From Octopus sinensis (taxonomy: Eukaryota), in assembly GCF_006345805.1 (NCBI RefSeq), contig NW_021835963.1, positions 62,001-126,000 on the forward strand: a DNA stretch of 64,000 bases, in the 5' to 3' direction. Shown here in pieces: positions 8,030 through 64,000 of this stretch (its first letter is position 1; the number at the start of each line of letters is the position of its first letter). The notes below the pieces were generated by a model. It did no database searches. It worked only from the letters and a program-made list of their open reading frames with translations, and was not told the DNA's origin. The translations under genes and the position numbers were made by a program.

Positions 8030-8672
8030 TTACAACGTGGAGGTTTGGTGATATCTTTGTCGGTCTTGTTTATCAGGTATTAGTCTCCAACTCCTCGATG
8101 GCAAACGCGTATGCTTCTAGGTGGCATGTAATGTATCTATTGCAGCCCAGGACAAGCTACTCTTCCTGTCAATGTTGTTGTTGCCCTCGAGCTTACGAGA
8201 TATGTACTCGCTTTTTGTTGATATGATGCTTGCTTCTCCTCCTACCTTCTGTTTAGGTAGACCAGTCCAGGCTCCTTTGGGTCGCGTGAAACAGTTGAAT
8301 TCTCAGATCACTTGCTCAGTAGTTCTTCTCCAACTCTGAAGATGTTCTTGCTCTCATTTTTGAGTAAGCATGGTATATACACATTTCTTTCTTTACTGTT
8401 TAGCAGGTGTTGTCTAAATGATACAATTAAAAGACTGTTTGGACTGACCCTATGCCTCTACCGCCATCACTTCATCTCACATATATCCTACTCTTCTCCT
8501 CTGGAAGCCAGCTGCTCGCGACACTAGAGGTCGCACACTCTCCTACCCTGATGTAATCTCCAGGGATACAGGCATCCAGCAACAGGACCTCCGTAATGCT
8601 ATGATGGACCGTGAAGTCTGGCGTAACACAGTAAATTCCATTGTCTCGACCACGGTCGAACAATGATGATGA
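8030..8672 (+). mobile_element. RTE-like LINE 3' end with (ATG)n tail
   Basis: Decayed C-terminal coding signal ending in ...CGAACAATGATGATGAT; mirrored at ~63585-64000. Confidence 0.55.
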
Positions 8673-9140
8673 TATATCCTATCGGTGTTGCTGTTAATGT
8701 GGAAGTTGCCAGTTGTGGTCAGTACCTTTCTGATGTTGATGTCCAGGCTACGTAACTCGTCGAGTGTCCAGTCCAATGTCCCAAATGGTGGTACTGGCAC
8801 TGGTGCTGCAAAAAGCATTGTGATATATAGTCTTGTTTAAATGCAGACAACTCTGAGTTCCATATTCTCCGAAGTCTACAGAATTACTCTTCAGTTATTC
8901 TGGCTTTAGTCACAGCACCAATGCATGCAACATTCTCACCGATTTCGAGGAACTTGTAGCTTTGATCATTATAAATTGGGGAGACAGACAGAAGAACCGT
9001 TGATGTACATGTTCCCTGCCTGGTCGCCAATCTTTCCTCGGTTGACTATCACGCATGAGCATTTCTCTTGCCCAACCGCCATTCCTATAACTCGTAAGAA
9101 TGCTGTGACTTCTAATTCTCTTGATGTTGGTCATATTACC
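8673..9140 (-). mobile_element. R4/Dong-type LINE fragment
   Basis: APVPVPPFGTLDWTLDELRSLDINIRKVLT, homologous to the frame at ~58250-58420; mirrored at ~63120-63585. Confidence 0.6.
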
Positions 9141-9665
9141 AGAATATCAACAAAAATGCATGAGTGTCATTTGTATGTACGTATGTATGTATGTATGTGT
9201 GTATGTATGTATATGTGAATGTATGCATTTATTTATGTATGTATGTATGTATACTTCTATATCTGTGTGTATGTGCGTGTATGTTTGGGTGTGTGTATTG
9301 ATTCTACGGAAATAAAAACAAATTATAAAATATATATAAAAAACTAAAAATGCTTTAATTTCACGTTTTTTTAACTGTAAGCCGAATGAAGACACTACCA
9401 GACGACGTGAAGAAGAATATCAATCGTAACAGTATTTCTGAACATACGGCTGTTATCTTCAGCTGTCACGGAGATAAGACACAATACATGCAGATCCAGT
9501 TGATAACATTCAGTGTCGAGAATAACCAAATTAAAGTCATTTGTGCATCACTCATACTTTCACAAGCTGCAGCTCGGAAGGAAACAATTTAGATCTTTCA
9601 AAAACTATATAACGTTCTCTCTTCTTTCTTTATTTCTTTTTCCCTCCTCTTTCAAACTTGCCAAA

Positions 9666-9792
9666 ATGATCGATGTTGACTCTTTATTCATAAGTCTGAA
9701 TGAGAAAGGGTTCTACCAAATATCCCAATATGTTCTCAGCGGCCTAAGCTTCTTCCCATATGCCCTCAGCTTACTAAAGTTAGTTTTCATAG
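9666..9792 (+). CDS. SLC22-like exon 1 (MIDVDSLF...KLVFI)
   Basis: AAAATG start, N-terminal cytoplasmic segment plus TM1, donor ATAG|GTAAGT, phase 1. Confidence 0.85.
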
Positions 9793-59955: not shown

Positions 59956-60260
59956 TCTTTATATTTAAAACTAAAGTTGTGTGTGTGTATCTGTCTACTC
60001 CGATTTAGATTCCTAACTACTCCCACATTTTGCGGTGCAGTTTAACCAAAACCGGGTATCTTATAGTCGTCATTTCATATCAAGCCCTTCTGTGTATTAG
60101 CGCGCGTCTACGATGAGTCTACGATTTAAAAAAAATTTACCATCATTTTTCCGCAGTTTTTAATGATTTTTGCTCGGGTTATGTAAAGGAAGTAACTCTC
60201 TAAAATGCTTATACAGTTATTTCCCTTACAAACCCGAGCAACGCCGGGCGATACTGCTAG
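59956..60260 (+). mobile_element. Non-autonomous Helitron, ~305 bp
   Basis: A|TCTTTATA...CCCGAGCAACGCCGGGCGATACTGCTAG|T; same 3' end as 33571. Confidence 0.75.
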
Positions 60261-63200
60261 TACACATATACGAGGAAACATTTTCCTCAAAACTTCTTCT
60301 ACATGCAAACATTACAGGCCTTTTGTATTTATTTGGGACAGAGAGAAAAAATCATTTATAGTCATAGAGATTAAACTGCTTAATACATCTAACCATTTCT
60401 TTCAAGATCAGTGAAAAAAGAGTATTTATGGTCAATTGCTTCGAAACCTACAGCTTTTCTCCTTCGATTATAACATACCTTTATAAAAATTATTATTTTC
60501 AGGGCAGTTTATTATGTTACTCTTTACTCTTTTACTCTTTTACTTGTGTCAGTCATTTGACTGCGGCCATGCTGGAGCACTGCCTTTAGTCGAGCAAATC
60601 GACCCCAGGACTTATTCTTTGTAAGCCTAGTACTTATTCTATCGGTGTCTTTTTGCCGAACCGCTGAGTTACGAGGACGTAAACACACCAGCATCGGTTG
60701 TCAAGCGATGTTGGTGGGGGGGACAAACACAGACACACACACATATATATATATACATATACATATATACGACGGGCTTCTTTCAGTTTCCGTCTACCAA
60801 ATCCACTCACAAGGCATTGGTCGGCTCGAGGCTATAGTAGAAGACACTTGCCCAAAATGCCACGCTGTGGGACTGAACCCGAAACCATGTGGTTGGTAAG
60901 CAAGCTACTTACCACACAGCCACTCCTGCGCCTGTTAGTTAATGTCTAAGTTACAATCTGGAAATGCTAGAACTTCTGGACAGGAAAAGGGGACAGTTAA
61001 CTCGCAGTTTACAAGTATAATACGAACATATAGGTGGAACGGTAAAAAATATGCAAGATTTTACGGATAAATGTGCAACGGCCATCATTGCTGTTAGACT
61101 AATTCCAGCAATAGGACTTCGATTCTTTCTTGGAAAATAATCCCTTCCTTCTAGGAAGAATTCTGATAAATAACAAAGTTGTTATGCATGCATTAATACA
61201 TATGGATATACATTCAGACGTGGATTAATTAATGGTAGTCTTTCGCAACCCCAGAAAAAGGGTTCTGCAGCTTTTTGCTGAATAGGATGTACAAATGATT
61301 CGTTTATAGGGATCAAACTTTTGTGCTGTACTGTTGTAGCTTATCGACGTTGCCTCAACAAGTGCATAAGTGCCCCTGACATCGATTGTCGAAGTGAGCA
61401 GAGCAACCTAAAACGAGATGTTCAGCAACAGAGGCGCAGGAGTGGCTGTGTGGTAAGTAGCTTGCTAACCAACCACATGGTTCCGGGTTCAGTCCCACAT
61501 CGCGGCACCTTGGGCAAGTGTCTTCTACTATAGCCTCGGGCCGACCAATGCCTTGTGAGTGGATTTGGTAGACGGAAACTGAAAAGAAGCCCGTCGTATA
61601 TATATGTATATATATATATATATATACGTGTGTGTGTTTGTGTGTCTGTGTTTGTTCCTCTAGCATTGCTTGACAACCGATGCTGGTGTGTTTATGTCCC
61701 CGTTACTTAGCGGTTCGGCAAAGGAGACCGATAGAATAAGTACTGGGCTTACAAAGAATAAGTCCCGTGGTCGATCTGCTCGACTAAAGGCGATGCTCCA
61801 GCATGGCCGCAGTCAAATGACTGAAACAAGTAAAAGAATAAAAGAAAACAGTGCACCGTTCGGTACGACCGTAAGAGCAACGTCCTAACAACGAGGTCAT
61901 GCGCCGTCCCACCCACCTACATTCATACATACATACATACATACATACATACATACATACATACATACATACATACATACATACATACATACAGATAGAC
62001 ATACAGACAGACAAACAAGGATGGTATTGGCAGTCACTTGGAATGTTAGAAACAGCAGCTAATCATTTTTCTAAATATATTCGACTGCTTTAACAGAAAC
62101 CGAAAACATGTTGCGTGACATAATTCCCGGGTCGGTGTTTCTGAAGAATGGAAATCTACTGCGCAGTAAAGAGTGGAACAGTTTTGATAACAAGGCGGCA
62201 CTTCTGATCAGCGCCGACTTGATTGCTAACCACCGCCACCACCATCTCTACTAACAACAACAACAATATAATAATAATAATAATAATAATAATAATAATA
62301 ATAATAATAATAATAATAATAATAATAATAATAATATTAATAATAATAATAATAACAGCAACAAGAATGATAACATTATCAATGATATTTCAATAGTATT
62401 TGCAAAACGAGCTAGAATACTCTCAGACATATAAACTGACTTACCTATGAAAACTAACTTTAGTAAGCTGAGGGCATATGGGAAGAAGCTTAGGCCGCTG
62501 AGAACATATTGGGATATTTGGTAGGGCGCTTTCTCCTTCAGACTTATGAATAAAGAGTCAACATCGATCATTTTGGCAAGTTTGAAAGAGAAGGGAAAAA
62601 GAAATAAAGAAAGAAGAGAGAACGTTATATAGTTTTTGAAAGATCTAAATTGTTTCCTTCCGAGCTGCAGCTTGTGAAAGTATGAGTGATGCACAAATGA
62701 CTTTAATTTGGTTATTCTCGACACTGAATGTTATCAACTGAATCTGCATGTCTTGTGTCTTATCTCCGTGACAGCTGAAGATAACAGCCGTATGTTCAGA
62801 AATACTGTTACGATTGATATTCTTCTTCACGTCGTCTGGTAGTGTCTTCATTTCGCTTACAGTTTAAAAAATGTCAAATTAAAGCATTTTTACTTTTTTT
62901 ATATATATTTTATAATTTGTTTTTAATTCCGTAGAATCAATACACACACCCAAACATACACGCACATACACACACATATAGAAGTATACCATACATACAT
63001 ACATAAATAAATGCATACATTCACATATACATACATACACACACATACATACATGCATACATACATACATACGTACATACAAATGACACTCATGCATTTC
63101 TGTCGATATTCTGGTAATATGACCAACATCAAGAGATAATTAGAAGTCACAGCATTCTTACGAGTTATAGGAATGGCGGTTGGGCAAGAGAAATGCTCAT

Positions 63201-64000
63201 GCGTGATAGTCAACCGAGGAAAGATTGGCGACCAGGCAGGGAACATGTACATCAACGGTTCGTCTGTCTGTCTCCCCAATTTATAATGATCAAAGCTACA
63301 AGTTCCTCGGAATCGGTGAGAATGTTGCATGCATTGGTGCTGTGACTAAAGCCAGAATAACTAAAGAGTAATTCTGTAGACTTCGGAGAATATGGAACTC
63401 AGAGCTGTCTGCATTTAAACAAGACTATATATCACAATGCTTTTTGCAGCACCAGTGCCAGTACCACCATTTGGGACATTGGACTGGACACTCGACGAGT
63501 TACGTAGCCTGGACATCAACATCAGAAAGGTACTGACCACAACTGGCAACTTCCACATTAACAGCAACACCGATAGGATATATCATCATCATTGTTCGAC
63601 CGTGGTCGAGACAATGGAATTTACTGTTAAGCCAGACTTCACGGTCCATCATAGCATTACGGAGGTCCTGTTGCTGGATGCCTGTATCCCTGGAGATTAC
63701 ATCAGGGTAGGAGAGTGTGCGCCCTCTAGTGTCGCGAGCAGCTGGCTTCCAAAGGAGAAGAGTAGGATATATGTGAGATGAAGTGATGGCGGTAGAGGCA
63801 TAGGGTCAGTGCAAACAGTCTTTTAATTCTATCATTTAGACAACACCTGCTAAACAGTAAAGAAAGAAATGTGTATATACCATGCTTACTCAAAAATGAG
63901 AGCAAGAACATCTTCAGAGTTGGAGAAGAACTACTGAGCAAGTGATCTGAGAATTCAACTGTTTCACGCGACCCAAAGGAGCCTGGACTGGTCTACCTAA

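Follow-up and report, generated by a model that had tools for sequence, protein, structure and literature searches.

Arms, spacer and gene copies

The window analysed here, a 64-kb stretch of Octopus sinensis DNA (GCA_006345805.1, VCDQ01001855.1) without any Ns, contains an intact SLC22-family gene and a broken twin of that gene, which lie in two arms of inverted orientation on either side of a spacer (Table 1). Inverted self-alignment pairs the left arm (plus) with the right arm (minus) in 19 collinear blocks, far above chance. An earlier note on this DNA had described mirror-image arms around a spacer, an intact SLC22 gene in one arm and a broken copy in the other, and private insertions and deletions in each arm next to old repeats and introns common to both. 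The arm alignment and the gene models agree with that description, the shared old repeats being SINEs, and the arms are larger than was claimed. The left start given there, position 8253, is an effect of the window edge, as homology goes on outward in a further 2.5 kb of the public record to which the window belongs (L001, which matches the window at 100% identity; positions in it are marked ext). Left positions 6940-7006 pair with ext 65317-65250 and, beyond a SINE private to the right arm, 6520-6931 pair with ext 66224-65804. The outermost pairing joins left 3500-3839 to ext 66558-66228, so that the arms are still aligned at the last base, ext 66558. The arm sizes, at least 34.6 kb on the left and at least 22.7 kb on the right, are lower bounds.

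Table 1. Coordinates of the features at the inverted SLC22 locus, in window positions.
Feature	Position	Strand	Remarks
Left arm	3500..38095	+	minimum extent; chain to right arm; inner end aligned base by base
Intact SLC22-family gene	9666..35938	+	10 exons, 548 aa, stop included
Left-gene exons 1-5	9666-9792, 11804-12009, 14954-15184, 17076-17278, 18544-18825	+	
Left-gene exons 6-10	24332-24466, 25420-25505, 31266-31386, 33438-33510, 35756-35938	+	
Segment absent from right arm	23531..34181	+	10.65 kb, left arm, carries exons 6-9
PLE-B, decayed Penelope-like element	37383..38079	-	inner end of left arm; found by tblastn using PLE ORFs from the window
(TA)8	38080..38095		inner end of left arm
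Spacer	38096..43837		5,742 bp, asymmetric, largely transposon remnants
PLE-terminus mini inverted pair	38096-38608		first 0.5 kb of spacer, bracketed by TA
Mariner transposase remnant	~38557-39620		spacer; interrupted by SINE at 38880-39291
LINE-like ORF	40068-40481		spacer
SINE pieces	41049-41539		spacer
Long TA tracts	41205-41329 and 42373-42554		spacer
(TA)43	43768..43853		inner end of right arm; homology stops inside tract
Right arm	43838..64000	-	runs at least 2,558 bp past window end; extra public sequence covers that part
PLE-B mirror copy	43854..44656	+	inner end of right arm
Broken twin (pseudogene)	45953..62571	-	exons 6-9 absent, exon 2 frameshift
Right-copy exons 1-3	62571-62445, 56655-56451, 53971-53741	-	
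Right-copy exons 4, 5 and 10	51804-51602, 50263-49982, 46135-45953	-	
Deletion junction, right arm	47857..47860		4-bp GAAG microhomology
Right-private 3.7-kb segment	56824..60524		LINE reverse-transcriptase ORF (RVT_1, 8e-9) and extra SINE

Exons of the left gene were placed using the relatives P0004 and P0006. Every intron is GT-AG and the frame is open through all exons. The product matches the Pfam families MFS_1 (1.3e-22) and Sugar_tr (7.3e-21) over residues 122-519 and aligns along its whole length with P0004 (561 aa); it is predicted to be an SLC22/MFS transporter, and the left gene to be the copy that stayed functional. The protein is 86% and 83% identical to O. sinensis paralogues and 75-77% identical to O. 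bimaculoides proteins, and the greater closeness of the former fits recurrent recent duplication in this lineage. In the local gene order the paralogue P0152 is encoded on the minus strand, the left gene on the plus strand and the right copy on the minus strand.

Judged from its reading frame and exon content, the right copy is a pseudogene. Besides the missing exons it carries a 1-bp deletion in exon 2 opposite left position 11910; this site falls within a run of AAA and may reflect an error in the long-read consensus. The RefSeq model of this copy, P0001, is truncated to 297 aa, begins at an internal Met past the frameshift and has exon 10 read out of frame. The locus of the outgroup paralogue P0152 runs unbroken across left position 23530, which indicates that the 10.65-kb difference between the arms is a loss in the right arm.

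Segments private to the left arm also include 3840-6519, 13839-14205 and 19943-22865, the last being a dimer of a putative Penelope-like element (PLE). Those of the right arm include the 3.7-kb segment, the SINE at ext 65382-65802 and a stretch of about 1.1 kb at 48.5-49.6 kb.

Divergence of the arms and sequence at their inner ends

Mismatches make up 2.71% of the 15,808 ungapped aligned columns between the arms, and private indels number more than a dozen. Between the two gene copies dS is 0.055 and dN/dS is 0.36. A duplication of this divergence should be older than the 2.5-My split between O. sinensis and O. vulgaris. Divergence is a mosaic: there are perfect runs of 742 bp and 531 bp, where about 224 bp would be expected, while other patches have diverged by 5-8%, and identity above 99% does not extend along the entire arm. 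In their sequence, the patches of near-identity look like the product of arm-to-arm gene conversion, and a tract in exon 3 indicates conversion with other paralogues as well.

Homology between the arms breaks off within a TA run on both sides and does not resume in the spacer, where self-comparison found no centred inverted homology (38096-43837). The earlier claim that both inner boundaries lie in (TA)n thus holds at base level. The two boundary tracts occupy one homologous position and therefore represent a single coincidence (P ~0.03-0.05) rather than two independent events. A (TA)n run reads the same on both strands, so two such tracts separated by 5.7 kb can act as the inverted homology of a fold-back. 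Today the left boundary tract measures only (TA)8, and lengths at the time of the event may have been different.

A decayed PLE, PLE-B, abuts the tract in each arm. It preserves the order RT C-terminus, CX4CX2C, GIY-YIG, with stop codons, and the right copy keeps 77 bp (44575-44651) that have been deleted from the left. An inverted 84-bp Zn-finger fragment (37994-38077) adjoins the left TA tract; this fragment comes from a different PLE and is present next to TA in both arms. Assignment of the PLE candidates at 19943-22865, at 28060-29774 and at the arm ends is tentative and draws on domains in the expected order and from a CxnCxxC-type motif upstream of GIY-YIG, with matches to RVT_1 (E = 0.0018) and GIY-YIG (E = 0.003 and 0.0045) that fall below the Pfam cut-offs. 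A search for a hammerhead ribozyme in the PLE pseudo-LTR gave no Rfam match at the gathering score or at E <= 1.

Origin of the duplication

The locus is likely to be a genuine inverted (tail-to-tail) segmental duplication, specific to the lineage, in the O. sinensis SLC22 gene cluster, and as such it is an ordinary, already known kind of segmental duplication. The explanation that we consider best, with a probability of roughly 0.45, is an inverted duplication formed by fold-back or template switch at (TA)n, followed by divergence and by decay of the right copy. The ancestral unit would have comprised at least 6 kb of upstream sequence, the 10-exon SLC22 gene, its 3' flank and the decayed PLE lying against a (TA)n microsatellite. 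A DNA-level event would have copied this unit in reverse: either a broken or resected end folded back on its own strand, or replication switched template. With the switch point within self-complementary (TA)n, the 5.7-kb spacer would be the single-copy loop left behind. The copies would then have diverged, gained private SINE, LINE and PLE insertions and been homogenised in patches by arm-to-arm gene conversion. The left copy would have stayed functional, and the right would have lost exons 6-9 (TM7-11) in one microhomology-mediated deletion of 10.65 kb and acquired its frameshift.

The earlier note had proposed an inversion or fold-back initiated at the TA tract. What stands of this is the architecture, as the succession of arm, (TA)n, asymmetric spacer, (TA)n and inverted arm matches the signature of fold-back; initiation at TA is weakened by the fact that such tracts are common here and linked to PLEs. 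If the duplication is real, we lean slightly towards (TA)n as the actual switch point. The inner ends in TA repeats are suggestive, fitting a fold-back origin without proving one, because TA tracts are frequent in the window and are targets of PLEs, because the outer junction lies beyond the sequence and because the record looks like an unplaced scaffold from an assembly with raised duplicate content. The sequence stops short of this outer junction, which would tell a fold-back or template switch apart from a tandem duplication with later inversion.

A real duplication to which (TA)n is incidental seems somewhat unlikely. The arms would merely end at a PLE-flanking TA microsatellite, a common feature of this genome, and the inverted copy would have come from tandem duplication and inversion via inverted transposons, or from a switch at an unrelated microhomology. 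The window contains 33 TA tracts of at least 16 bp, amounting to 2.1% of its bases. Of the block ends in the left arm's alignment, about 24% have a TA tract no more than 15 bp away, compared with 4.5% of positions, which suggests that these tracts are hotspots of change in general. PLEs are reported to favour (TA)n targets and to insert as 5'-truncated tandem or inverted units (PMC8557442). Since the boundary TA flanks PLE-B in both arms, the tract has an independent reason to exist, and a TA-bracketed PLE mini-dimer also opens the spacer. Inverted SINE and PLE copies able to mediate inversions crowd the window. Nevertheless, homology ends exactly inside the TA run in both arms, both the size of the spacer and the inverted homology at its two ends are what fold-back predicts, and within the sequence covered no inverted transposon pair lies at the two ends of the right arm.

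We hold with considerable confidence that the duplication is real rather than an artefact of assembly. The converse, that two haplotypes of a single-copy locus (or the locus and a collapsed relative) were joined in inverted orientation in a scaffold without chromosomal placement, assembled from PacBio CLR data, so that the 'pseudogene' is a null allele, is unlikely. The record has a WGS rather than a chromosome accession, is listed at exactly 200,000 bp and appears unplaced, and duplicated BUSCOs reach 5.2% in the O. sinensis assembly compared with 0.4-1.9% in other octopus assemblies (PMC10700109). Mosaic divergence ranging from 0% to 8% by patch is also typical of recombining haplotypes, and no protein identical to the left product is on record, whereas the broken copy has one. 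On the other hand, the substitution level of 2.7%, with the dS given above, is higher than the heterozygosity of 1.22% reported genome-wide in the sister species, the more than a dozen private indels are large ones within 35 kb, and the two disabling lesions of the right copy are independent. The arms are moreover joined by a contiguous, N-free, unique and asymmetric spacer of 5.7 kb. When haplotigs are retained, they normally end up as contigs of their own or as repeats in direct orientation, and a chimera from a missed adapter has identical arms and lacks a spacer. A chimeric-read fold-back is ruled out by the 2.7% divergence, the many private indels and the spacer.

The arms could also have two layers of origin, which we consider very unlikely. 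An older palindrome, with arms meeting near left ~37,350 and right ~44,660, would have received a PLE at its centre as a head-to-head unit (now the 99.2%-identical innermost pair) and then other transposons, so that the TA tracts at the arm ends belong to transposon biology and not to the duplication event. This would account for the innermost 737 bp being 0.68% diverged compared with 3.96% in the adjoining block, a shift that coincides with the PLE-B stop codon and the 77-bp indel; from a single-step origin, a step from 0.7% to about 4% is not predicted without later gene conversion. Head-to-head PLE insertion is documented (PMC8557442), and PLEs in the window do lie as head-to-head inverted units, at 19943-22865 (arms 99.76% identical; flanked by (TA)15 at 19919-19948 and 22901-22930) and at 28060-29774 ((TA)37 at 28055-28128). 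In these two clear units, however, TA flanks the outward 3' ends, whereas in PLE-B it flanks the inward 5' sides, and the 3' end of PLE-B was searched for and not located. In both arms TA is adjoined by the additional 84-bp fragment from another PLE, and two further near-identical patches far from the centre indicate that gene conversion alone can give such shifts in divergence.

A broader idea, which we offer as a long shot, is that (TA)n tracts seeded and multiplied by TA-targeting PLE and mariner elements could be recurrent points of fold-back or template switching in octopus genomes. If this were true, the alternating orientation of P0152, the left gene and the right copy would represent one cycle of transposon-primed expansion of a gene family in cephalopods, producing arrays of alternating orientation.

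Comparison with known systems

Primate sex-chromosome palindromes are large gene-bearing inverted repeats that are more than 99.9% identical through arm-to-arm gene conversion. The octopus locus resembles them in having arms of tens of kb, a unique spacer, a gene in the arms and patchy conversion (the 742-bp and 531-bp runs), and differs in that its arms are ~97% identical and one gene copy is dead. We rejected a conversion-maintained palindrome, as arm identity is below 99%, the right copy is not intact and there is no sign of selection keeping both copies.

Human germline fold-back inverted duplications have spacers of 0.77-70 kb, with a median of 3.4 kb (Hermetz et al. 2014, PMC3907307). 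The octopus locus likewise has inverted arms around a presumably single-copy spacer of similar, few-kb size (5.7 kb), with non-palindromic spacer sequence and TA inverted homology at the spacer ends, TA being common here. The human cases are de novo, several Mb in size, lie beside terminal deletions or translocations and form via a dicentric intermediate (PMC3907307). Unlike them, the octopus duplication is old, interstitial, ~35 kb long and fixed, or at least present in the assembly; divergence and partial deletion have since altered its arms, which are known inward from an outer junction that the sequence does not reach.

Origin-dependent inverted-repeat amplification, ODIRA, proceeds in yeast by template switching at short inverted repeats and yields inverted junctions with small loops (PMC4689423, PMC10766183). 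The alternating gene order in octopus is similar, but ODIRA produces an inverted triplication in one event, whereas the third octopus member, P0152, is far more diverged. At only 83% amino-acid identity, the P0152 gene is not part of the same event.

Passages in the literature on fragile AT-rich sequence describe FRA16D Flex1 (AT)34 as stimulating chromosome deletions in yeast (PMC12972899) and TA repeats expanded in tumours with mismatch-repair deficiency as fragile (PMC12972899, PMC9890227). The octopus tracts are likewise self-complementary TA runs able to form hairpins or cruciforms and break, although they show no sign of breakage, and the (TA)43 of the right boundary is longer than the Flex1 (AT)34 given in those passages (PMC12972899).

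The gene itself shares with vertebrate SLC22 (OAT/OCT) members the MFS fold, a long first extracellular loop, a large central loop and a setting in a paralogue cluster. RefSeq names taken from vertebrate members (A6, A7, A8) are labels of similarity only and do not denote orthology. Unlike the vertebrate SLC22 clusters, the octopus cluster represents a cephalopod lineage-specific expansion.

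Extent and inner ends of the inverted arms

Inverted self-BLAST of the window, which has 36.8% G+C and zero Ns, recovered a long collinear chain between its left part (plus strand) and its right part (minus strand). The sequence L001, which is 100% identical to window positions 36066-64000, extends the right end by 2,558 bp; in the record VCDQ01001855.1 (GCA_006345805.1), base 62001 corresponds to window base 1. Refined chaining of the extended sequence gave an arm-to-arm chain of 19 blocks, with 428 mismatches in 15,808 ungapped aligned columns (2.71%; Jukes-Cantor K = 0.0276). 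With the extra 2.5 kb, homology continues outward through left-arm positions 6940-7006, a SINE private to the right arm, and left-arm positions 6520-6931 and 3500-3839, the last of which pair with the final bases of L001. As homology is still running at the last base of the extended sequence, the arms are at least 34.6 kb (left) and at least 22.7 kb (right) long. Position 8253, which an earlier note on this DNA took as the left limit, is an aligned base, but it is the mere partner of window base 64000 and not the true end of the arm.

At base level, arm homology stops inside (TA)8 at 38080-38095 and (TA)43 at 43768-43853. The inverted self-BLAST and this alignment together bear out the architecture that the earlier note had described (inverted arms, a spacer and inner ends in TA repeats), and its statement that each arm has private insertions and deletions agrees with our count of over a dozen large indels found in one arm only. 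We looked for centred inverted (mirror) homology inside the spacer and found none. Had the spacer arisen wholly by transposon insertion after the duplication, the original palindrome would have had none; compared with a same-genome repeat library of ~170 kb, about half of the spacer is demonstrably repetitive or transposon-coding.

Two kinds of short repeat were also observed. A short way past the right end of the window (L001 1149-1256, extended positions 65303-65410), adjoining the right-private SINE insertion, a 55-bp unit occurs twice in tandem, the second copy offset by 53 bp (65303-65357 and 65356-65410); its TATATA is surrounded by short palindromic GTAAAGAGTTA...TAACTCTTTAC motifs. Long trinucleotide and low-complexity microsatellites at 3590-3913, 9806-10192, 13042-13299 and 15537-15980 differ in length between the arms and produce spurious long ORFs in several frames.

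Features of the duplicated region and its surroundings, in window coordinates unless stated otherwise (PLE, Penelope-like element; PLE-B, decayed PLE at the inner ends of both arms)
Feature	Position	Orientation	Remarks
Gene of paralogue P0152 (locus L002)	record 31166-57327, ~4.7 kb left of window start	-	557 aa, 83% identical to left product
Left SLC22 gene	9666-35938	+	10 exons, all introns GT-AG, uninterrupted ORF of 548 aa
PLE unit 1, head to head	19919-22930 including TA; arms 19943-21199 and 21607-22865	inverted	99.76% identical over 1,259 bp
PLE unit 2, head to head	28055-29949 (unit 28060-29774)	inverted	two Zn-finger/GIY-YIG ORFs pointing outward from junction at ~28960-29013
PLE-B, left	38016 down to 37383	-	decayed copy common to both arm ends
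PLE-B, right	43918 up to ~44656	+	decayed copy common to both arm ends
Spacer	38096-43837		between arms
PLE-terminus mini inverted pair	first 0.5 kb of spacer	inverted	bracketed by TA 38080-95 and 38581-96
Mariner transposase remnant (Transposase_1, 4.5e-11), LINE-like ORF, further SINE pieces	spacer, after mini pair		mariner remnant split by SINE
SINE-like family, ~410 bp	10339-10746, 11251-11655, 17296-17654, 38880-39291, 41049-41539, 51178-51584, 56824-57208, 60525-60933, 61431-61843, others

An SLC22 gene, its broken counterpart and the integrity of the assembly

Relatives were collected by an exhaustive search and mapped back onto the window. The gene in the left arm is complete, and residues 122-519 of its product match Pfam MFS_1 (1.3e-22) and Sugar_tr (7.3e-21). 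The right copy keeps exons 1, 3, 4, 5 and 10 with their splice sites, has a 1-bp deletion within an AAA run of exon 2, and lacks exons 6-9 (TM7-11), so that the earlier reading of an intact gene with a broken twin is upheld. Exons 6-9 sit in a 10.65-kb segment of the left arm (23531-34181); the junction that replaces it in the right arm, at 47857-47860, shows a 4-bp microhomology (GAAG). The neighboring paralogous gene, which encodes P0152, aligns without a break across left position 23530, which identifies the left arrangement as the ancestral one and the missing segment as a deletion in the right arm. Over 409 shared codons the two copies differ with dS of 0.055 and dN of 0.020 (dN/dS 0.36).

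The protein search returned one strong match to the concatenated exon translations, the 297-aa O. sinensis RefSeq protein P0001 ("solute carrier family 22 member 7-like"). This protein models the right copy (45953-56558), initiating at an internal Met downstream of the frameshift and joining exon 5 to exon 10, which is read in the wrong frame. The intact 548-aa left product has no identical protein on record; it is most similar to paralogues from O. sinensis (86% and 83% identity) and to O. bimaculoides proteins (75-77%).

The P0152 gene and the left gene are arranged head to head, so that the cluster runs in alternating orientation (minus, plus, minus). The divergence of P0152 from the left gene is far greater than that of the right copy, and we do not read the two head-to-head genes as an older palindrome, as their common similarity covers only ~0.7 kb (promoter/upstream region and exon 1). 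The P0151 gene belongs to a separate cluster on chromosome CM016869.1 (locus L003, where two more paralogues lie in tandem), and this separate location disqualified L003 as a lead to the outer end of the arms; P0158, which could have been placed beyond them to the right, has no entry on record.

An alternative to a genuine duplication is that two haplotypes were joined by the assembly in inverted orientation. VCDQ01001855.1 is a WGS-accessioned record listed at exactly 200,000 bp, apparently a scaffold that is unplaced or was cut artificially, which bears on how far its structure can be trusted, and duplicated BUSCOs amount to 5.2% in the O. sinensis assembly versus 0.4-1.9% in other octopus assemblies (PMC10700109). 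However, divergence between the arms is well above the heterozygosity of 1.22% reported for the sister species, the large private indels are numerous, the right copy carries two independent disabling lesions, and a unique spacer joins the arms with no gap, so that we regard a mis-join as unlikely. A fold-back from a missed adapter or chimeric read is ruled out by the arm divergence, the indels and the spacer. We estimate a probability of roughly 0.8 that the structure is real.

Divergence mosaic, TA tracts and transposons

Divergence between the arms is patchy and not uniform along their length. Left-arm positions 10479-11482 show one mismatch in 1 kb against 61708-60706, including a perfect run of 742 bp, and a second perfect run of 531 bp (17990-18520, mostly intron) lies in a near-identical patch at 17990-18710, paired with right-arm positions ~50.1-50.8 kb; if divergence were homogeneous, the longest perfect run would be expected to be ~224 bp. 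The innermost 737 bp of the arms differ by 0.68%, positions 35384-35884 by 8%, and the outermost blocks by 5-6%. From these sequence comparisons we read the mosaic as the trace of an older duplication whose arms were homogenized in places by gene conversion between them, with the near-identical patches as candidate tracts. Exon 3 (14954-15184 versus 53741-53971) has 15 differences in 231 nt, and at nine consecutive differences within nt 94-148 the right copy agrees with the P0152 gene, the left copy with the P0151 gene, a pattern that suggests ectopic conversion among members of the SLC22 family as well.

The window contains 33 (TA)n tracts of at least 16 bp, which make up 2.14% of its bases, and about one quarter of left-arm block ends have a TA tract (at least 12 bp) no more than 15 bp away, versus 4.5% of all positions. 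Several of these tracts derive from the SINE-like family, a dozen copies with 81-93% mutual identity and internal short (TA)n, in which ARAGORN detected no tRNA-like head. Recombination between two SINEs of the left arm was considered as the source of a 3.3-kb segment private to the right arm; this was rejected, as the left SINE is no hybrid but matches the outer right SINE at 99% identity over its full length.

ORFs of the two inverted units encode, in order, a reverse transcriptase (RT) signal (E = 0.0018), a CX4CX2C motif and a GIY-YIG signal (E = 0.003-0.0045), with Pfam scores below threshold; this order defines Penelope-like elements, and we read the units as putative members of that group. 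Unit 1, whose 407-bp center carries the RT motif region, is flanked by (TA)15 on both sides, occurs in the left arm alone and is evidently of recent origin. Unit 2, from the same element family, lies between (TA)37 and (TA)13 plus (TA)43, inside the 10.65-kb segment deleted from the right arm. Rfam gave no match to a hammerhead ribozyme, which would have helped to confirm the PLEs. Its many sub-threshold microRNA matches are TA hairpins; those at 36069-36357, 28916-28986 and 38235-38480, to assorted precursor families (e.g. MIR7723, with 78.8 bits where the cut-off is 200), fall on transposon junctions that are TA-rich or palindromic, and a hairpin artefact is their likeliest explanation.

An insertion bias toward (TA)n and inverted, 5'-truncated insertion units have been reported for PLEs (PMC8557442). 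Given this bias and the presence of PLE-B at the arm ends, the TA tract there is independently explained as a transposon target; in both arms an 84-bp inverted fragment of a different PLE copy abuts it. Divergence shifts from ~4% to 0.7% at left ~37360 / right ~44652, the site of a 77-bp deletion in the left arm within the PLE-B coding sequence, about its stop codon. Such a shift might also arise in two layers, with PLE-B inserted as a younger head-to-head unit at the center of an older palindrome, but the TA flanks of PLE-B are arranged the other way round from those of the two clear PLE units, which makes this the less likely reading. For this reason we favor the innermost near-identity as a conversion tract halted at the indel. 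A search for the 3' end of PLE-B did not locate it. No DNA similarity was seen past the coding part, and a promising match to L003 proved to be a dispersed repeat and not a conserved gene flank.

Age, significance and origin of the duplication

O. sinensis split from O. bimaculoides ~34 My ago and from O. vulgaris 2.5 My ago. The arm divergence (K ~0.028, dS 0.055), together with the closer match of the left product to O. sinensis paralogues than to O. bimaculoides proteins, places the duplication after the O. bimaculoides split, and it is probably older than the split from O. vulgaris.

The lineage is known for gene-family expansion and a heavy transposon load. If real, the locus is a cleanly resolved interstitial inverted segmental duplication that still bears a fold-back signature at its inner junction, i.e. 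a single-copy loop between self-complementary repeats, and it offers a single case of rearrangement associated with TA tracts and transposons in a cephalopod genome. The RefSeq protein for the locus is a pseudogene model and the intact neighbor is missing from the protein record, which calls for a correction of the annotation; such cases affect how many SLC22 genes, and how many "duplicated" genes, are counted in O. sinensis. Otherwise this is an ordinary inverted segmental duplication of gene and pseudogene, of modest significance, and it opens no long-standing question.

As to its origin, the two TA tracts are by definition inverted repeats of each other. If a resected 3' end or a stalled nascent strand terminated in the distal tract, it could therefore pair with the proximal one and copy the gene region in reverse, leaving the spacer as a loop. 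The architecture fits such a TA-mediated fold-back or template switch; the earlier note had proposed an inversion or fold-back initiated at the TA tract. The two boundary tracts, however, mark one homologous position and hence provide a single coincidence (P ~0.03-0.05), so that the statistical support is modest, and the tract has its separate explanation as a transposon target. Given that the duplication is real, we consider TA-mediated fold-back or template switch the best-fitting model, at slightly better than even odds. In human inverted duplications that were sequenced, spacers of single-copy DNA lay at every junction (766-70,466 bp, median 3,428 bp) and were taken to represent the loop formed when a strand folds back on itself (PMC3907307); the octopus arrangement of arm, (TA)n, asymmetric spacer, (TA)n and inverted arm likewise has a spacer between its inverted arms.
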